Of a DNA stretch of 64,000 bases, positions 8,427-37,300 are shown one piece after another (position 1 is the stretch's first letter; every line of letters begins with the position of its first letter). The notes under the pieces are model-generated. The model did no database searches. It saw nothing but the letters and a program-made list of their open reading frames with translations, and was not told the origin of the DNA. Position numbers and translations under genes: made by a program. Location of the stretch: sequence record ON529855.1; one strand, 5' to 3'.

Positions 8427-10321
8427 GCGTGAGGCCGGCGCGCCTTGATCCGGGCGATGATGTCGGTCATGACAGCCTCGTCGTCGATCCCATGCTTGTC
8501 CTTGAGCGCGTTCATGCGCCGGCGCGCTTTCCATTCAGGCTCGCCGCGTCGCCCTACTTTCGACCGGCGGCGGAAAGTCGGACTGAAGGCGAACAGACAG
8601 AAGAACACCACGGCCGCCAGAATCAGGGGAAGCCACAGGAAGGTCACGGCCAGCAGGCACAGGAACTGGTCCTTCAGGTCCATCATGTGGACCCGGAACC
8701 AACTCAGGAGCGCGAGGACCAGGCCGACGCCGATATAGGCGCCGGCGATGTCGTTCCAGGTCATAGGCCCTCCCTGGCGATGCGGTTTTCCAAAAGCTGG
8801 AGCAGGTAGAGATAGGCGTCGAAGTCGGTCAGCACCGGTTGGGTCGGCGTCCCGTCGATCTTCACATGGACCCATTCCGGGTCGTCGCGAGCGGCGTGCG
8901 GGCGATTGTCGAAGCGATAGATCATGACGTGCAGGGCGTGGTGGGCCTTCTCCACCAGCTTGCGCGCTCCCATGCAGGACAGGCTGGCGTAGCTGAAGCG
9001 GACATTCGCCTTGTGCGTGTCGCCCATGCCTTTCGGATAGCCGAAATTCGTCCCCCAAGGCAGGGTCAGCTTGATCAGGTAAAAGAGGTAGCGCAGCGCC
9101 ACCAAGTGGCCGCCAAGCAGATTATCCTCATCCATAATGAGGACCGTAGACCAGACAGGCCGCCCTTCAAAGCGCGCGGCCTCGTCGTACTCCGGCGCCA
9201 AAGAGCGTGGGTTCCGCACCGCCCGAATGCTCAGGCGCAGGGCCTCCAGAAGCTGCGTGCGGTCCATCGCCTTCAGGACCTTGACCTGATAGGACAGGAC
9301 GGCGCGTTCCCACGACTCTCGGGGCAGATTGATCACAGCGTGGAACTCCCGTCTTCGTCCAGATTGTGCCACCACTCGCCGATCGTGCTGCGGCTCAGCG
9401 CTTCGATCATTTCGGCGGTCAGGGTGCACCCGGTGCCGCGTTCGCTGGCGCGCTTCATGCGGCGCAGGGCGTCGCCCTGGAGCCGCTGCACCCGATCGTT
9501 CTCCGCTCGCCAGTCCTCCACCATCACCAGTAGGCCGTGACGCTGCGATGGTCGGGGAAGGTGGCGTTGAGCCAGGCCAGGGCCTCGGCCTTCAGCGGCG
9601 CTTCGGCGATCTCGTGGTCGCGGTAGGCCATGGGCTCGCACTGGTAGGTGCCGGTCTCGAACACGAAGACGTCGCAGGCGCGATCCTTGACCCCGAAGCC
9701 CTTGGCGAAGGCCTGAGGCTGCGGCTGCTGATCATCCGGCAACGGCACCTCGACCTCGCGCATCTCGTAACGCGGACCGGGCTCGTAACGCTCGCCGTAG
9801 TAGCCGTCCACGTCAGGGAAGAAGAGGCCGCGCGCCTGGACCCACTCGGGATCATAGGAGTCGACATGCCGCGCGCGCGCCTCGTCCTTGACGCGGACCT
9901 TGCGCATGACCTTCTGGGTCAAGGTTTCGGGGCGATGCAGGCGCCACCAATTCTCGGGGCGCACGTCATCGATCGCGTAGCGGGTCAGGAAGTAGAAGCT
10001 GGCGAAGCGGTCATGCCAGGAGCCCTTGTAACCCAGTTGACCCCGGACGCGTCCCTGAGCGTCCACGGCGTGCGAATACATATAGTGGTCGGTCGACACC
10101 AGGCCCCAGCCGGCCGGGGCCGTCACGGCGGTGAACAGGTCATCGACCGCCTCGCCGATGATGAACCCCAGGGTCTCAAGGTCGACGCGGTTCTCCGCGA
10201 CCGCGACGAACTCGGTCGGCAGGCGATTCAGGTCGCGCGGCTTGGTCGCGCGGGTCACCGTGTCCGGACCCGTCAGCAGGGTGGTCAGGGCTTCTTCCTG
10301 GATGCTCATCTGGGTCGACAT
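8423..10321 (-). CDS. four hypothetical genes, one a 2-TM protein
   Basis: 8423-8764 (2 TM), 8761-9336, 9333-9524, 9524-10321. Confidence 0.7.
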
Positions 10322-14306: not shown

Positions 14307-15229
14307 CCATGACCCTTCTCAGCGAACTCTTCCCTGACGGCTCCAGCGGCGGCTTGCGCCGTGGCGCTCGGATCAGCCTTACCACCTCAACCACGCTCCA
14401 AGTGGCGGACCATGTCGCCCTGGCGCCTCCGGGCTACGGCCTGTGGGGGTGGGACGTCATCTGCATCGGGGCCGGCGGCTCAGGCATGCGTTACTTCGGC
14501 GGTTCCGGCGGCGGCCGAGAACAACGTTTCGTCCCGGTCGCGGAAGTGGGGACGTCGGTGGCGGTCGTGGTCGGCGCCGGCGGCGTCGCCGCGAGCCACA
14601 GCATCGGCTCGCCCGGAGGCGACACCAGCTTTGGCGTCTCGCTCGGGGCGAGCGGCGGCGGCGCCGGGCTAGGGTCAGCGGCGGTCGACGGCATCTTCCC
14701 GGCGCGGACCTCAAAACGACCGCTCGTCGACGTCGGACCGAGCAGCGCGACCGCCTGGGCCAACTATCAGACCGGCTCTCCAGGGACTTCGGCGACTGCG
14801 ACGGTTCCCACGAACGTGTTCGACGGCAGTCGGGGCGGCGGCGGCGGCGTGGGGGCGTCCCAGGCCGGAGGATCGGTCTGGCCTCACCCGAGCGCCATGA
14901 GCACCGTGCGTGCGGCGGGGGGCGGCTTTGGGGGCGTTGATGGCGGCGCCCCTGCTTCAGCCGCCCAACTTGCCCTGGTGCGCGTCCGCGCCGACATCGC
15001 TACAGCGGGGCCAGGCAACCCGTCCACAACGCCAGGCGCGCCCGGCCACCCCGGCGTGGGCGACTATCCGGGCGGCGGCGGCAACGGCAACGCAGGTTCC
15101 GCCGGCAATGCAGCGGGCGACGGCGGCTTTCCGGGCGGCGGCGGCGGCGGCAGCAACGGCACCAGCGGGACCCAGGGCAATGGCGCGGCCGGCGTCGTCT
15201 ACCTCTATCCGATTTTCGAGCCTCTTTGA
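14303..15229 (+). CDS. glycine-rich tail-fibre-like protein
   Basis: ICIGAGGSG, VVVGAGG, GGFPGGGGGG and GNGAAGVVYLY glycine-rich domain motifs. Confidence 0.75.
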   Translation: MTMTLLSELFPDGSSGGLRRGARISLTTSTTLQVADHVALAPPGYGLWGWDVICIGAGGSGMRYFGGSGGGREQRFVPVAEVGTSVAVVVGAGGVAASHSIGSPGGDTSFGVSLGASGGGAGLGSAAVDGIFPARTSKRPLVDVGPSSATAWANYQTGSPGTSATATVPTNVFDGSRGGGGGVGASQAGGSVWPHPSAMSTVRAAGGGFGGVDGGAPASAAQLALVRVRADIATAGPGNPSTTPGAPGHPGVGDYPGGGGNGNAGSAGNAAGDGGFPGGGGGGSNGTSGTQGNGAAGVVYLYPIFEPL

Positions 15230-15714
15230 TGCGCCACGCTCTCATCCGCGACGACCAGGTCGTCAACATCATCCTGTGCGGTCCTGAGTTCCAGCCGCCC
15301 GAAGGCCTCACGCTTGTTGCGTTGGGTGAAGCCGGAACGGCTGCGATCGGCTGGCTCTATGACGGCCAAAGCTTTGCACCCCCGCCCGATGCCGCGCCGG
15401 AGCCGCAAACGCCGGACCTGCGTCCGACCAAGGCGCGCTTCGGCGACCTGTTCACCGATGACGAGCACGCCGCTATGAACCTGATCCGGTGGCAATGCCG
15501 TCAGATGGACGCGGCCGAGCGCGCCATTCCCGGTAACCCGCTGGTCTACGCCGAGACCTTGTTCATCAAGTTCGATCTGCCGGCTGAATTCATTGAACTG
15601 GACCTGCCCATGGTGGCGCAGGGTCTGGGCCTGCTCGGCATGTTGGGTGTGTTCGGCGACCGCGCTGAGACGCGCATTCCCCAGGTCCTGGCGAACGAAG
15701 ACCCGCCGGCCTAA
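15226..15714 (+). CDS. putative fibre assembly/chaperone protein
   Basis: MRHALIRDDQVVNII...AAIGWLYDGQSFAPPP, typical of genes following Gly-rich fibres. Confidence 0.6.
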   Translation: MMRHALIRDDQVVNIILCGPEFQPPEGLTLVALGEAGTAAIGWLYDGQSFAPPPDAAPEPQTPDLRPTKARFGDLFTDDEHAAMNLIRWQCRQMDAAERAIPGNPLVYAETLFIKFDLPAEFIELDLPMVAQGLGLLGMLGVFGDRAETRIPQVLANEDPPA

Positions 15715-22940: not shown

Positions 22941-23063
22941 CGGACAGTATCCGGACATAAGCGGACATCACGGTCGTCCATATATGGACGTTTAACCCGC
23001 TCAACGGCCTCAAACGTCCATATATGGATGGTAGGTTCGATTATCCGGACATTTGCTGGACAT
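22941..23063. repeat. GGACA/TGTCC iteron- or operator-like array
   Basis: CGGACA at 22941, 22952, 22962; CGTCCATATATGGAYG at 22975 and 23015; TATCCGGACAT at 22948 and 23042. Confidence 0.7.
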
Positions 23064-23593
23064 CAGGAGGGGCGAAGCTGGCTCCGCCGCATCTCGTCGA
23101 TCCCCTTCGCCAGGGCGTAGTTGGAATAGGCGTGGTCCCCGGTGATCTCGGCGTCGACGGCTTCGGCGAACCAGGCCGGCATGTTGACGCCGTGGTTCTC
23201 GTCCGGCAGTTCGACCTCCAGGATCATCAGGTGGCGCAGGGCGGGGTGATCGAACATGTCGAACTCCAGCGTCAGGTCGCCGTGCGGGATCGACCAACGC
23301 GTCTTCTCGATGCAGGCGCCTTTTGTGTGGTGGATCGCCAGGTTCAGGTAGGTCATCCCGTCGATCTCGAACTCGATCTCATGGCTGGCGAAGGCCGAAC
23401 CTTCGACGGGCCGCTTCATCGTCAGGTGATAGCGCGGGTTGAACAGCTTGCACGAGGTCTGGCGGATGCGCACGATCCAGTCGCCCGTCCCTTGGACGTA
23501 GGCCTGGGTGATCTTCACCACACGGGCGGCGTCCAGGACGGCTTCCGGCGGCAACGACTTCAGTCGGAACCGGCGTTCGATCTCTACGCTCAT
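23063..23593 (-). CDS. CYTH-domain triphosphatase/cyclase family protein
   Basis: VEIERRF (ExExK-like), ITQAY, VRIR, EIEFEI, IEKTR, EFDMF, LEVEL. Confidence 0.9.
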   Translation of the reverse strand: MSVEIERRFRLKSLPPEAVLDAARVVKITQAYVQGTGDWIVRIRQTSCKLFNPRYHLTMKRPVEGSAFASHEIEFEIDGMTYLNLAIHHTKGACIEKTRWSIPHGDLTLEFDMFDHPALRHLMILEVELPDENHGVNMPAWFAEAVDAEITGDHAYSNYALAKGIDEMRRSQLRPS

Positions 23594-24306: not shown

Positions 24307-24389
24307 GCCGCTTTTCTGCCTTGTCGATTTTTTCGTGTCAACCGCAACGGCGCCGGTTGACAGCAATCCCGGCACATGCGAGAAGGACA

Positions 24390-24857
24390 CCTCGGCGGCG
24401 CGGTCCCAGGGCAGCGTCGTCGGGCGATCTCGACCGGCACACGGGCTTGGGAAGATCAGAGGAATAGATGGGGAACCACAGCAGCGCTCCGGCGGGCTGC
24501 CCGATCACCGCGCTATCCTTGCGGACCCCTCAGGGGATAGGCTCTGACGCCGCAAAGATGTCGAGAGGACGGACCCTGCTGAACGGCGCTGTAACGCCGC
24601 CTCGGTAGGAACAAGGTCGAGCCGTAGCGCCCTTCGGGCGCCGCATCGACTGGACCCCGCCCATTACCAGTATCGTAGGTGGCTAAGCGTTCGCCTCCCC
24701 CGTCCGGGACATGTACCGGCCGGACCGAGAGGTATTCGCGAGGCGAGCACGCCAGGGTTACGTCACCGAAGCCGGCTCACCCGCCCGGCGCGATCGAGGG
24801 TCCATGGCCCTCCTTACCAAACCCCCGTCGGCTCGCGCCGGCGGGGGTCTCTTCTTG
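24390..24857 (+). ncRNA. candidate large structured ncRNA of about 460 nt
   Basis: No credible ORF of 60 aa or more; TTGACA at 24357; multiple hairpins; plus-strand terminator at 24821-24856. Confidence 0.45.
24821..24856 (+). terminator. intrinsic terminator
   Basis: ACCCCCGTCGGC-TCGC-GCCGGCGGGGGT then CTCTTCTT; the T-G pair is valid only on plus. Confidence 0.7.
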
Positions 24858-24864
24858 AGGGCCT

Positions 24865-25083: not shown

Positions 25084-25360
25084 CGAGTCTTCAAGGCTGT
25101 ATCGGGCGCCGACCTGGAGTTGCCAGGTCTCGGGATGATCAGGTCTGATTTTCCTGGTGTTTCCTGCGCCGTATCCCAACATTTTGTTAAGACTTCAAGA
25201 GGCGTTTCCAGGCGGACTCGCTGCGCTCCTGTCGGGCGGGGCTTCCCTGCCGCCGGGGGATGGCGGGGCCTCGCGGCCGGAGCGTAATCGGGGGGCGTCA
25301 TGCGCTCGCACAGGGAAGTGTCCTGCCAAGGACAGCCCTTTGTGGCACACTTGGGGCGAA

Positions 25361-25612
25361 ACGAAAAGCCCCGCCGGCGAACCGACGGGGCTTACCCACA
25401 AGGGAAGGTCCTAAGACCTCGCTCGATGCCTCTTGCCTTACGGCTATCCCGCATGACGCGTGGACCCCTTACAGGGCGGGTGGACGCTTTTGCCCCGAAG
25501 AGCGCAACCGATCTATCGTCCGAAACAGGGTGAGACCTCGGCGGCCGCACGAGGTCTCGGGCGTTCTCAAGCCGGCGTTCCGATCCTCGTACTGACCGGC
25601 GATTGAACAGCC
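25361..25612 (-). ncRNA. candidate structured ncRNA of about 250 nt with own promoter and terminator
   Basis: TTGACT-17-CATACT promoter (25644-25616), UUCG and GUAA tetraloop hairpins, terminator at 25361-25393. Confidence 0.65.
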
Positions 25613-25640
25613 GGGAGTATGGCCCAGCTTGACTGTAAAG

Positions 25641-25985
25641 TCAAGACCGCGCGGTGAGGGAGCAGGCCATGGAGTTTGGATCGTAGTCGTTGGATCGGTA
25701 GCCCTCCGCGAACAGGTAGGTCTGGCCGCCGGTCTGGAAGGTGTAGACGACGCAATGTTCGCCCGTGAAGACCCGCGTCAGGCCGACGGCGGCGCGTTCC
25801 TGGGCGGCCTTGTCGGCGGCGAAGCGCCGTCGTTCCTCGGCGGTCATCGGCCGGGTCTGATTCGGCCCCACGTCGACGAGGGTCGGGACGTGCTCGACCG
25901 GCGGCGCCGGGCTCTGCGACGGCGCATTGCAGGCGGCCGTCAGCAGCATGGCGGCGGCGGCGAGGATGAGTGTGGTCTTGGTCAT
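25641..25985 (-). CDS. predicted lipoprotein, paralog of 26431-26739
   Basis: Lipobox LTAAC; C-terminal C-x4-F-x3-GQTYL-x-A...C. Confidence 0.75.
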   Translation of the reverse strand: MTKTTLILAAAAMLLTAACNAPSQSPAPPVEHVPTLVDVGPNQTRPMTAEERRRFAADKAAQERAAVGLTRVFTGEHCVVYTFQTGGQTYLFAEGYRSNDYDPNSMACSLTARS

Positions 25986-26041: not shown

Positions 26042-26377
26042 TTAGTCGTCTAAATCAGGATGCCAGCCTGCTGGACGCGGCTCCGGCTTCCAGCGCCGAT
26101 CTTCCCCGGTCGGGAAGCCGAACTTCAGCACCATGTCGTAAGAGTCCCAGAACGCCCGCGCCTGGGGATAGGCGACCAGCACCAGATACAGCGCCATAAG
26201 GCCGTTCAGTGCGGGGATCAGGAAGAACAGCATCACCGGGAACATCATCATAGGTCGGATGACCGCGTTGCCGTAATCAGACCGGCTCCACCAGTGGGCG
26301 CTTTGGATGATAAATACCCCGCAGACACACATAGGTGCGAGCCAGTAGATCAGGAATGGATCAGGCATGGGGACCAC
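26042..26377 (-). CDS. 2-TM membrane protein
   Basis: Two hydrophobic segments. Confidence 0.65.
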   Translation of the reverse strand: MVPMPDPFLIYWLAPMCVCGVFIIQSAHWWSRSDYGNAVIRPMMMFPVMLFFLIPALNGLMALYLVLVAYPQARAFWDSYDMVLKFGFPTGEDRRWKPEPRPAGWHPDLDD

Positions 26378-34352: not shown

Positions 34353-37300
34353 CAGCCGTCTCCGTCATCGCCGGGCAGACTGCTCAGATAGCGCTGCCGT
34401 TCTTCCTCGGCGATTTCGCGCTGAAGCGCCGCTTCACGCTCCTGCTCCTCGCGCGCCCACTTGGCTTCCAGGTGCTCCTGATAGATCGCGTTGGCGCCGG
34501 TGCCCCAGTAGTCGCATTCCAGGCCGCAAGAGCGGCACTTCTCCCGCGACACCGTTTCCACGTAGTCGGTGGAATTGCACTTCGGGCAGCGCTTCTGCCG
34601 GCTGGTCGCCAGGAGCGGGACGCCGGTGTCGACGTGGCCGTTGCTGTAGCGAGGGTAGGTCAAGAGACCGACACCCGACAGCCTGCGGCGCGAACCTCGG
34701 CGGCGAACTCGCCCAGTGAGACGCGCCCGTCCGTCATCGCCAGATTGGACCGGAGCCCGGCGTTGTTCGTCAGGTCGATGCGCGCGGACTGCGGCGGGTT
34801 CAGCCGCAGGCGGCGGTCCGTCGGGTCCTCGTAGGCTTCACCCTCTTCATAAGGGTCGAAGTTCAGAGCCTCGGGCCGCACGCCCGTGACGTCTTCCTCG
34901 ACCACGTAGGTGATGGTGAACTCCAGGTCATGGCGCGCCGTGTCCGCTGTGGGTTCGGCGCCGTCCACGTCTTCATCCTGGATCGCGCGACCCACCACCG
35001 GCAACCGGTGGGCGTCAACGTACTGCCGCAGGGCCAAACGCGCCAGTTCATTGGCCTCGTCGTCGCTCAGCAGGTCGGCCTCGTCTTCTCCGTCCTCGGG
35101 GGCTTCGATGTAGTCCGAGTAATAGGTCAGGCTGAACACCTGCACCCGTGTGGGGAAGGCGGTGGCCCGGCCGTCGCGCGAGTTCGTGCGCCGGCCGGAG
35201 CCCAGGGACACCTCCATCGAGGGCGCGTCGAGGATATAGCGGCTGGCGAGGAAGGCTTCAGGGGTTGTCGGGGGCGTCGTCATGCTTGATCTCCTCGCCG
35301 TCGATAAACAGGATGCCGGCGCCGTCGTTGGCGTCCAGCGCGGCGAGGTAGGTGCGCCACCCCGCGTCCGTAATGGGCAAATTCCCCGGCGGATCGCCCA
35401 GGATGAAGTGGGTCGTCGCAGCCGCGTAGGCTTCGAGGTCCTGCGCCATCTGCTCGGCGACCGCCTCGGGCACGACGCCGTCAGGGAACAGCGGCGGCGT
35501 CGTTTCGTCCGTCCAGAGCGGGGACGACCAGGTGGACAGGGTCATGCCCATGCGGGCGGGCCACTCCTGAGGGAAGAGGCGGGTGAACCATTCCTTGACC
35601 TTCTCGCGCTGCTCGGGCGTGTCCGGACCGCCGACGTCGTCAATGATCTGCAACGGGGACTTGGGGTCCTCGCCGCGCCAGTGCGTCAGGAGGTCCTCCA
35701 TCGCCTGCCGCTGGTGCGGGTAGAGGCCGTCAGTCTCGATGTCCATGAGGACGGTCGGCGGCGCCGCCAGCCCCGCGCGGGCGCGACTGACATGACGACC
35801 GGTGCCGGAACAGACGCGGCAGCGCTTATAGTAGGGCGGCATGGTCATGTAGACGTCAGGACCGCCGCGCTTCAGTTGCGCCAGGTATTCATCTTCCCCG
35901 TCGACACGGCCGGTCCCCTCGCAGGTCCGGCAACGCAGCGGCTCCAGTTCGAAAGAGGTGGCGTAGGCGATGGTCACGCGGGAACCTCGGTGAAGACGTC
36001 TTCGGTCAGGTGGTAGGAGCGGCGCGAGACGATTCGCAGGGCCTCGTCGCCCCGACGGAAATCGCCGCACCGGGCTTTCGCCAAGGCGAGGGAATGGAAT
36101 TCCACCACGTCGCCGAGGCTCAGGCCGATGTCCCGCCACTCGTCGCCGACCTTGCGCTGCACGAAATGGGTTTCGTCCCACTGGCTTCGGCCCTGGGGGC
36201 GGACGACGGGCAGCGTCGGGTTCTGGATATGGGCGACGAGCGCCTTCAACGCCCGGTCCAGGTCGGGCGCGGAATCCAGGTCGCCATCATCATCCGGCGG
36301 CGGCAGCGTGTCCCAGCTAAAGGCGGCCGTGCCGCGCATGAGGGTGGAGAGGTCCAGCGTTTCCAGGACCTTCAGCGCCAGGCTGGCGTGTTCCAAGTAG
36401 GCGGTCCAGGCCGGTCCGCCCATGTCCACCTTCCGTTTCGGATTGTAGTCGAACCAGTGTTCGTCCTCATGATGCCCCTCGGCCAGGCAGATGGCGCGCG
36501 CCATCTTCTCCAGCGCCGGATGGATCGTCGTGATGTCGACCAGGGGCTCGCGCGGGACGGCGCAGGGCGGCGGCGCGTCAGCGGCCATGGAGCGCTTCCT
36601 TATGTTGATCGAGAAAGGCTTGGGCGGAGGCCCCGGCGGCGGATTGCTGCGCCCCTTGGCCGCCGCCCTGGGCGATCGCCGTCAGTACGCCGAGGGCGCG
36701 ATCCAGCAAGGTCGCTTCATGATAGGCGCGGTAAGCCATCTGCAAGGTTTGGGTCAGCAGGGTGCTTTCGCTGCGCTCCCACCCCCGGTGCTGATCCAGC
36801 AGGGTGAGGAGGCCCGCCTTGTCGTACTGGATGAGGTCCAGCAGGGCGTCGGGCGTCATCCAACCTTCGCGGTCGATGCGCACAAAGGCCGCATGGGTGT
36901 CTCTCGCGGTGATGCTGACGTTGGTCCCGCCGACATGGTTGGTGCGGAGGGTCAGGGCGTTGGTGTCGCGGATCACGAAGCCGAGGCTGGTCGAGCCGTC
37001 GGCGGCGAAGGCTCGAACGGTGACGTCGGACCCTTCATCCTGCTCGATTTCCGGCTCCAGATAAAGGACGAGGTCGCCGCCGGCGCAGGCCGGGCAAGGC
37101 TTCATCACCGGACCGTGGTCGGTCGGGACCTTGATCTCGCGATGGTCGCCGCAGAGACGGCAGCGGACGTCAGCACCCATGACGGCTCTCCTGGATGATC
37201 AGGGCCATGTGCTCCGCCTGGGCCTGTCGCAGGCGTTCGGCCGCCTCGGTCATGCGACTGGGCTGGGCCACCACCATGGCGTCGATCGCCGCCGAGACCC

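Follow-up and report, generated by a model that had tools for sequence, protein, structure and literature searches.

The genome of Brevundimonas phage vB_BpoS-Domovoi (ON529855.1), a 352.7-kb jumbo siphovirus of the Dolichocephalovirinae, contains a small RNA gene whose product, to judge from sequence comparison, is the first recognised member of an undescribed family of phage RNAs. The gene was studied in a window of 64 kb (the whole stretch of DNA analysed), where record positions 87340-87660 correspond to window positions 25340-25660 at 100% identity. It lies on the minus strand in a 557-bp unannotated gap between DOMOVOI_01690 and the convergent DOMOVOI_01680. The genome paper limited its annotation to coding sequences (CDSs) and transfer RNAs (tRNAs) called by ARAGORN, and mentions no such RNA (PMC10070969). 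An earlier note, made from the letters of the window, had proposed a stand-alone, structured non-coding RNA (ncRNA) of about 250 nt at this place and had found no family for it. That observation is confirmed, and the interpretation as a stand-alone, minus-strand structured ncRNA without a described family is supported; the conserved unit, however, is a core of about 80 nt (25521-25423) and not the whole 250 nt. The best explanation overall, to which a probability of roughly 0.6 is given, is a stand-alone gene for a stable, trans-acting phage RNA of an undescribed family with a universally conserved partner. The RNA is not unique to Domovoi. Other phages carry relatives joined directly to tRNA genes, hence the proposed name of tRNA-array-associated pseudoknot RNA, and that this is a real family of structured ncRNAs can be held with great confidence.

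A pseudoknot common to all members

The conserved core is an H-type pseudoknot, absent from the earlier note, that emerged from comparing the Domovoi and Kikimora clades. The fold is of this type because the 5′ strand of helix P1 sits in the loop of helix P2. After the P2 3′ strand come hairpin Hb, hairpin Hc followed by AU, a purine-rich linker and the P1 3′ strand, and all of these family features are present in Domovoi (Table 1). Across clades P2 takes the forms GGGGA/UCCCC, AGGCG/CGCCU, GGAUG/CAUCC and UUUAC/GUAAG, and P1 the forms ACGGU/AUCGU, CCGGC/GCCGG, CUGGC/GCCAG and ACCCU/AGGGU. Hb occurs in every member with a loop of varying sequence. The 11 aligned sequences agree without exception in the five Hc pairs, in the bulged A and first loop G of Hc, and in two dinucleotides, UG behind the P1 5′ strand and AU behind Hc, a pattern that makes Hc a likely recognition element.

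Other parts come and go. Hairpin He is absent in Kikimora, Gurke and three members from the IMG/VR database, while Hd is GUC-GAAA-GAC in Kikimora and GCC-UUCG-GGC in Bambus and is missing from the IMG/VR members. The Domovoi 5′ domain has two arms: an interrupted stem of GUUC/GAAC (25608-05 with 25566-63) and GCCGGU/GCCGGC (25600-595 with 25576-71), and a 9-bp hairpin at 25558-25532. It is 94% identical to that of Bambus, which leaves too little variation for informative covariation, and it is absent or replaced in every other clade. The 5′ domain, He and Hd are dispensable add-ons. At the position of Hf, four nucleotides past P1, Kikimora has its terminator, contig L158 a small hairpin, and contigs L149 and L048 the acceptor stem of the next tRNA.

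The hairpins listed in the earlier note were all found again: those now called He, Hb, Hd and Hf (AGGUC-UUAG-GACCU), the GAGACCUCG/CGAGGUCUC hairpin that forms the second arm of the 5′ domain, and the GCCGG/CCGGC stem of the first (25600-25571). The tetraloop hairpins are moreover backed by compensatory changes. A possible long-range pairing of GGCUGUUC with GGAUAGCC fared worse, for it can form in Domovoi, but Papperlapapp, Bambus and Marchewka have a G-to-C change that breaks it without compensation, and it is incompatible with two supported hairpins. Several further helices were tried and dropped. Hairpin Ha (CUGUU/GAUAG in Domovoi, GUCUCUC/GAGAGAC in Kikimora) differs in register between clades, is mismatched in Gurke and would compete with both pseudoknot helices. 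Helix S (UCCAC/GUGGG) has purine transitions opposite U as its sole support, shifts position between clades and is absent in the IMG/VR members. An ACCC/GGGU closing helix is not conserved, and CCCGC/GCGGG, an alternative to Hc, is broken in Gurke.

Support from covariation

Covariation was first of all measured in a plain MAFFT alignment of seven phages, which was not fitted to the structure and in which the pseudoknot was written explicitly. There, 96.1% of cells are paired, against 31-58% when the partners are slid, and six pairs have changed on both sides, a count that 3 of 500 shuffles reach. The few unpaired cells result from a 1-nt loop indel misplaced in Bambus and Marchewka. Domovoi and Kikimora differ by ten substitutions in paired columns, and together these (10/10) amount to five compensated Watson-Crick pairs, with a random-placement P of ~8e-6. 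The earlier note had held that the G-U pairs work on the transcribed strand alone, and indeed 18 G.U cells would become A.C mismatches if the other strand were folded, which identifies the minus strand as the folded one.

In a hand-curated alignment of 11 sequences from about six clades, 261 of the 262 base-pair cells pair, and compensatory double changes occur in 16 of the 27 pairs, including all ten of P1 and P2. A covariance search model, R1, encoded P1, He, Hb, Hc and Hd as pairs and left P2 unpaired; P2 was nevertheless complementary at the right spacing in every new member found with it. Since R1 did not encode these pairs, P2 is supported independently, in what amounts to a blind test. 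The IMG/VR homologs were found by exact patterns centred on Hc and then filtered with R1; for them the invariance of Hc is partly an effect of ascertainment, members with an altered Hc escaping such a search. It is genuine for the comparison of the Domovoi clade with the Kikimora clade, both of which came from BLAST.

It is conceivable that no RNA gene exists here at all, and that the signal comes from an element acting as DNA (an operator, origin or packaging site), from a small protein gene or from chance hairpins. The genome has 65% G+C and folds well on both strands, and several spurious open reading frames (ORFs) overlap the interval. A DNA site, however, would not be expected to carry a pseudoknot with 16 compensated pairs, or G.U pairs and G.U-to-G-C/A-U exchanges that fit one strand only. 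Coding is excluded by frame-breaking indels and the lack of codon periodicity: among the five phages with the same gene order, variable columns in the interval number 15/12/12 over the three phases, and there are seven gap columns, several of them 1-nt indels, against 9/3/22 variable sites by codon position for the neighbouring DOMOVOI_01680. The earlier note's view that the interval holds no credible ORF was thus borne out, and an explanation without an RNA gene is scarcely credible.

A gene with its own signals

The Domovoi copy has the marks of a stand-alone small RNA (sRNA) gene, namely its own promoter of the sigma-70 (host) type, an intrinsic terminator and no ORF. A consensus scan gave a single promoter-like site in 2 kb (shuffles give 0.2), the TTGACT-17-CATACT sequence at 25644-25616 on the minus strand, exactly as the earlier note had described it, and the terminator that the note had placed at the other end is there too, with its U tract. 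Also present is the palindrome seen over the -35 hexamer, CTTGACT/AGTCAAG, which may be an operator; in Bambus just five of its seven positions are kept.

A promoter and a terminator with a U tail would also suit a base-pairing sRNA of the Hfq type, one that regulated phage or host mRNAs through an exposed seed, and purine-rich, Shine-Dalgarno-like unpaired stretches do occur in the sequence. The part conserved across clades is nonetheless almost wholly structured, with no conserved single-stranded stretch longer than ~5 nt, and some members lie inside tRNA arrays without a terminator tail. Such a role is very unlikely.

Table 1. Features of the RNA gene and its flanks (window positions; strands as read).
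Feature	Position	Strand	Remarks
DOMOVOI_01690	25641-25985	minus	Gene on one side of the gap
Inverted repeat CTTGACT-N4-AGTCAAG	25628-25645	minus	Over the -35 hexamer and the DOMOVOI_01690 stop codon
-35 hexamer TTGACT	25639-25644	minus	Consensus scan; kept in all five syntenic phages
-10 hexamer CATACT, 17-nt spacer	25616-25621	minus	Consensus scan; conserved
Predicted primary transcript, ~250 nt	25358-25612	minus	Putative start ~25612-25608; putative 3′ end ~25362-25355 in U tract
Clade-specific 5′ domain	25532-25608	minus	Two arms
P2 5′ strand GGACG	25517-25521	minus	All five pairs covary across clades
P1 5′ strand UCGGU	25507-25511	minus	Inside P2 loop; invariant UG next; all five pairs covary
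Optional hairpin He, GCUC-UUCG-GGGC	25492-25503	minus	Pseudoknot loop 2; U.G / U-A / C-G exchange
P2 3′ strand CGUCC	25482-25486	minus	Pairs with GGACG
Hairpin Hb, G-CCCU-GUAA-GGGG-U	25464-25477	minus	Loop 3; 3/5 pairs with compensatory changes; the stem-loop without its outer G-U is 25476-25465
Hairpin Hc, CC-A-CGC / loop / GCG-GG	25448-25463	minus	Loop 3; sequence same in 11/11 members
Optional hairpin Hd, GCC-GUAA-GGC	25435-25444	minus	Loop 3; cross-clade comparison
P1 3′ strand AUCGA	25423-25427	minus	Pairs with UCGGU
Hairpin Hf	25406-25419	minus	Four nt past P1
Intrinsic terminator	25355-25393	minus	Consensus scan; 12-bp stem, UUCG loop (stem-loop 25393-25366), U tract
DOMOVOI_01680, 72 aa	24865-25083	plus	Convergent with the RNA; between two large conserved non-coding regions

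Members in Brevundimonas phages

A blastn search of 50,697 phage records found the region in seven phages only, all of them jumbo phages of B. pondensis. Kabachok and Papperlapapp are 97.8% identical to the Domovoi region and Bambus and Marchewka about 86%, and all four are syntenic with it. Kikimora and Gurke have only a central stretch of ~70 nt in common with Domovoi, at ~80% identity. Their copies stand in another neighbourhood with their own promoter (TTGACG-17-TATACA) and their own terminator, right behind which lies a further promoter. In its 5′ half, the Kikimora RNA is a homolog of another RNA, also unannotated, from the Domovoi-like phages, one that is fused to tRNA-Cys beside a permuted transfer-messenger RNA (tmRNA), with a Ro60 gene nearby. 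This makes the RNA modular, with a common core and exchangeable 5′ domains, and comparison of these sequences suggests that RNA modules have been shuffled between loci. No paralog was found with R1 in the window or in 100 kb of Bambus, and the RNA is single-copy in the sequence searched; a BLAST "second place" in Bambus proved to be merely a similar terminator.

The protein encoded upstream of the RNA is present only in the five syntenic phages. Pfam and PHROG searches gave no assignment for the flanking proteins, including DOMOVOI_01680, and the neighbourhoods of the different clades have no protein family in common.

Several observations were made along the way in these genomes. The tRNA-Cys-fused RNA is a structured, unannotated sequence of ~200 nt at the 5′ end of tRNA-Cys (Bambus L016 ~2490-2700; also Kabachok L017), and its 5′ module, a stem GGGCCGC/GCGGUCC around ACACGAUC...GUGCAA, is the 5′ module of Kikimora and Gurke. 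In Gurke (L004 2512-3102) the locus tags of the record skip GURKE_00080 precisely where the gap with the RNA lies, apparently because curation took out a CDS that had been predicted across the RNA. At Bambus L016 2864-3121 lies a permuted tmRNA in two pieces that the annotation lacks (57.9 bits on RF04321, against a gathering score of 47), with a promoter resembling that of the Kikimora RNA copy; the genome paper reported that it detected no tmRNA (PMC10070969). BAMBUS_03890 (L040 1166-2551, minus), annotated as an "RNA-binding protein", is an orthologue of Ro60/Rsr with a TROVE domain (E = 2.6e-12) and a vWA domain. The 1-kb unannotated stretch upstream of it (L040 2552-3540) holds a YrlA-like RNA (32.6 bits, gathering 69) and several more T-arm-like modules without an ARAGORN call. 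A peptidyl-tRNA hydrolase is also annotated in Bambus.

Uncultivated members and their tRNA context

Three members and one probable member were found in IMG/VR. The first, on a 161-kb contig (L112/L149), scores 32.9 bits with R1 (E ~1e-7 to 1e-10); its P2 is AGGCG/CGCCU, its P1 CCGGC/GCCGG and its Hb CCAG-GAAA-CUGG, and its Hc is identical to that of Domovoi. L158, on a 54.6-kb contig with a locus G+C of 42%, scores 21.4 bits and has P2 UUUAC/GUAAG (extendable to 7 bp) and P1 ACCCU/AGGGU. L048, on a 22.8-kb contig, reaches 12.9 bits with P2 GGAUG/CAUCC and P1 CUGGC/GCCAG, and L161, the probable member, 12.7 bits with P2 GUUUG/CAAAU and P1 ACUAU/AUGGU. The loci of family phages range from 42% to 66% G+C.

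Three of these cores adjoin tRNAs. In L149 the end of the core is the start of tRNA-Gly(UCC), within a same-strand array of ~17 kb and 19-20 tRNAs that also holds a GOLLD RNA (154.3 bits, gathering 150; 14831-15315) fused to tRNA-Val. The L158 core begins 3 nt past the CCA end of tRNA-Gly(UCC) and closes a five-tRNA operon, with a terminator behind it. L048 is a bare core of 79 nt between two tRNA-like genes, with spacers of 0-4 nt. Since L048 and L158 are without the 5′ domain, the core alone is the functional unit. The L149 array also includes a predicted suppressor tRNA (anticodon tta), and the contig has tRNA-like genes with unusual T-loops (AUCGUUR) missed by ARAGORN, e.g., a tRNA-Tyr-like gene at ~10161-10246.

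Other searches added no members. Further weak R1 matches were discarded as lying inside ORFs of 200-790 aa. The first IMG/VR patterns gave chance matches only, such as L008 inside a 1295-aa ORF. So did a strict 20-nt pattern in metagenome and genome collections (Kelch-like coding repeats, an acidobacterial element), a pattern that required GGGG before UCC and would miss the clades found later. A loose architecture screen in Python was too permissive in G+C-rich DNA, its extra candidates falling in ORFs of at least 200 aa. As an observation in its own right, many acidobacterial contigs (L018, L019, L023-L025, L027, L029, L034 and L037, from soil metagenomes and metagenome-assembled genomes of Acidobacteriota) share a highly conserved stretch of ~250 nt around GGGGTCCACGCGTTGTCTGCGGGAT, which is unrelated to the phage RNA.

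These contexts bear on three rivals that are still live, ranked here in order. One means by which the core could work is as a small ribozyme or an RNase recognition module for cutting polycistronic tRNA transcripts, and the stand-alone Brevundimonas copy would then be a derived form. The core adjoins tRNA genes in L149, L158 and L048, and a compact, pseudoknotted core with ~20 invariant nucleotides resembles the small ribozyme classes. Yet no Rfam ribozyme family matches, RNase P and RNase Z already make tRNA ends, no conserved cleavage-site feature was recognised, and the RNA lies away from any tRNA in seven phages and probably also in L161. Such a processing role is unlikely, if somewhat less so than the two alternatives that follow.

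A second possibility is a riboswitch-like attenuator acting in cis, with the core as an aptamer that decides on termination at 25393-25366; read-through would enter the conserved downstream block, antisense to DOMOVOI_01680. The conserved junction bases and covarying stems do look aptamer-like, and in both the Domovoi and the Kikimora clade the core has a terminator behind it. Closely downstream, apparently on the same strand, stands the block that five phages share at 100% identity, and by eye the P2 3′ strand can pair alternatively with downstream G-rich segments. These alternative pairings are not conserved, however, and no downstream gene is common to the clades. Nor does the core occupy a 5′ leader: what follows is a convergent gene in Domovoi, a separate promoter after the terminator in Kikimora, and a tRNA in L149 and L048, directly and with no expression platform or ORF. 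The reading is weakened most of all by those members that run straight into a tRNA, and it seems improbable.

A third is that the core, co-expressed with tRNAs, acts as a decoy that titrates a tRNA-targeting defence enzyme of the host or a tRNA-binding factor. The array context, the tRNA-like size (79 nt in L048) and an invariant hairpin suggestive of recognition by a conserved macromolecule would all be amenable to this. The core is nevertheless without tRNA-like features, which weakens the idea: it has no cloverleaf, T-loop or D-loop motif, 5′/3′ acceptor pairing or CCA end, and ARAGORN and the tRNA and YrlA models of Rfam give no match. A decoy appears about as improbable as an attenuator.

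How the RNA might act

A stable RNA acting in trans is probable and the most likely mode of action, because the RNA itself is the sole thing conserved across clades. Its partner is probably universal among bacteria, since ~20 nt are invariant across loci of 42% to 66% G+C. The pseudoknot could serve as a rigid scaffold that presents the invariant face of Hc and junction to a partner shared by very different hosts, perhaps a small ligand or a universally conserved part of the machinery for translation or tRNA processing; a link to translation or tRNA is put forward tentatively, as the less probable case. In other phages the RNA would be made within polycistronic tRNA transcripts and freed by tRNA-processing enzymes, and in the Brevundimonas jumbo phages the core would have acquired its own promoter, terminator and 5′ domain. 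The RNA may well belong, like GOLLD and ROOL, to an auxiliary toolkit for translation and RNA maintenance (tRNAs, tmRNA, Ro60/Y RNA), as is suggested by the repeated fusion to tRNAs and by the occurrence of tRNAs, tmRNA, peptidyl-tRNA hydrolase and Ro60/YrlA in Brevundimonas phages.

It is also conceivable, though doubtful, that the core represents a new class of functional module made of RNA alone, either a new small ribozyme or an aptamer for binding or sponging some universal small molecule, for example a nucleotide-derived signal. The face formed by Hc, UG and AU would then be the ligand pocket or active site, and phages of very different hosts would carry the module alongside their tRNAs.

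Several points weigh against a trans-acting family of this kind. What the RNA might do is drawn from the conservation pattern and context. The alignment of 11 sequences from about six clades was curated by hand; L048 and L161 score only ~13 bits with R1, and L161 needs a 40-nt insertion between Hb and Hc. The Domovoi RNA gene is not near tRNAs according to ARAGORN. A conserved structured block (25246-25333), apparently on the same strand, lies just past the terminator, so that read-through and a role in cis are possible for the Brevundimonas clade. The folding energy is unexceptional (z = -1.8 on the minus strand, -2.4 on the plus strand); thermodynamics alone is not decisive, and it is the covariation that lifts the structure above chance.

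Neighbouring conserved elements

The block at 25246-25333 (within 25084-25363), with the terminator of the RNA on one side and the convergent gene ending on the other, shows 100% identity among five phages, a higher conservation than in the flanking genes; it is non-coding because indels exclude a reading frame. It folds as a four-way junction with an 8-bp closing stem CUUCCCUG/CAGGGAAG, a GGCC-GCGA-GGCC hairpin and a hairpin with a C-rich loop of varying length. DOMOVOI_01680 itself is a genuine coding gene, with a clear third-position bias in the five syntenic phages. Upstream of it on the plus strand, a conserved non-coding stretch of 558 bp (24307-24864) ends in a 12-bp G+C-rich hairpin (24821-24848), 16 nt ahead of the start codon. 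Blocks 24385-24593 and 24683-24772 are nearly invariant among the five phages, with compensatory changes in one hairpin, and the stretch may be a long structured leader or another ncRNA.

A motif ATGTTGGGATAY-N4-CAGGAAA-N3-CAGGAAR occurs at 25155-25191 (minus) and recurs in Bambus L041 at ~26076-26107 and 35345-35378, one of these copies directly after a terminator downstream of the large terminase gene. On sequence grounds it is a candidate phage-specific promoter or regulatory site; as a promoter, the window copy would drive transcription antisense to DOMOVOI_01680. The sole neighbourhood protein with a recognisable domain is a CYTH-domain protein (inorganic triphosphatase; PF01928, E = 5e-6) encoded at 23063-23593 (minus), two genes downstream.

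Comparison with known RNAs

A search of the whole window against Rfam 15 gave no match at gathering thresholds, and at E<=10 only terminator-like fragments of 15-18 bits, so that the earlier note's inability to name a family stands. The Kikimora homolog likewise had no Rfam match at gathering. ARAGORN called no tRNA or tmRNA gene in the window, and no tRNA-clan Rfam model matched the RNA interval. Weak matches to sraL, sar, suhB and anti-hemB were set aside as terminator or chance matches, and a suspected resemblance to the RNase P S-domain and the peptidyl-transferase region of 23S rRNA was dropped for want of cmscan support. No prior description was found in the literature, the 10,006 unnamed viral structured-RNA candidates of PMC10690425 standing outside that comparison.

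The Kikimora copy locally resembles SraL/RyjA (RF01408) over 24 nt around the Hc 3′ strand and Hd. At 11.4 bits against a gathering threshold of 39 (E = 2), and with the segment unpaired in SraL while it is a covarying hairpin here, the resemblance is a chance one. In architecture the core is like H-type pseudoknot aptamers and ribozymes in general, such as SAM-II, preQ1-II, c-di-GMP-II and pistol, in which a hairpin loop also pairs with a downstream strand and conserved junctions accompany covarying stems. None of their Rfam models matches, however, the RNA lies outside 5′ untranslated regions, and, unlike in these H-type classes, loop 3 embeds two hairpins, of which one never varies in sequence. 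Ro60 and a YrlA-like RNA are encoded in this phage group too, and YrlA (RF02553) and the Domovoi RNA may both be counted as stable RNAs of an RNA-quality-control and translation toolkit. The YrlA model nevertheless matches neither the Domovoi nor the Kikimora RNA. The Domovoi RNA has neither a tRNA-like T/D module nor a terminal stem with an Rsr site, and its gene is not beside rsr, which stands with the YrlA-like RNA at another locus of these phages.

Small, stable RNAs also come from the tRNA cluster of phage T4, where "species 1 and 2" (RNA C and D) are released by tRNA-processing enzymes. To our knowledge these are specific to T4-like phages and are not known to fold as the pseudoknot described here.

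The closest parallels are GOLLD (RF02032) and ROOL, structured ncRNAs of phages and prophages that have no assigned function, often lie near tRNA islands and form homo-oligomeric RNA cages (10.1101/2024.12.08.627333; PMC5737381). The likeness consists in being phage-borne and, in L149, L158 and L048 though not in Domovoi, adjacent to tRNAs. GOLLD and the new RNA also both have a conserved 3′ region and a variable 5′ region, and in L149 they share one array, each directly upstream of a tRNA. They differ in that no similarity of sequence or covariance model links them to the Domovoi RNA, and in that the Brevundimonas phage copy is a stand-alone gene far from tRNAs. GOLLD and ROOL are moreover 500-800 nt long (400-800 nt as a criterion of the group) with many junctions, as against a one-pseudoknot core of ~80 nt, about a tenth of that, in a whole RNA of ~250 nt.

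These jumbo-phage genomes hold RNA genes that the annotation lacks: besides the RNA described here there are a YrlA-like RNA, a permuted tmRNA and other conserved blocks without coding function. Enigmatic structured RNAs such as GOLLD and ROOL are a known feature of phage tRNA arrays, and the new RNA would be a much smaller member of that category. With a core of ~80 nt, ~20 invariant nucleotides and occurrence in low- to high-G+C hosts, it should be easier to work with than either, and seven cultivable Brevundimonas phages carry it as a separate gene open to deletion or mutation. A small RNA with a presumably universal partner could in this way reveal what the phage RNAs associated with tRNA arrays, GOLLD and ROOL included, do.

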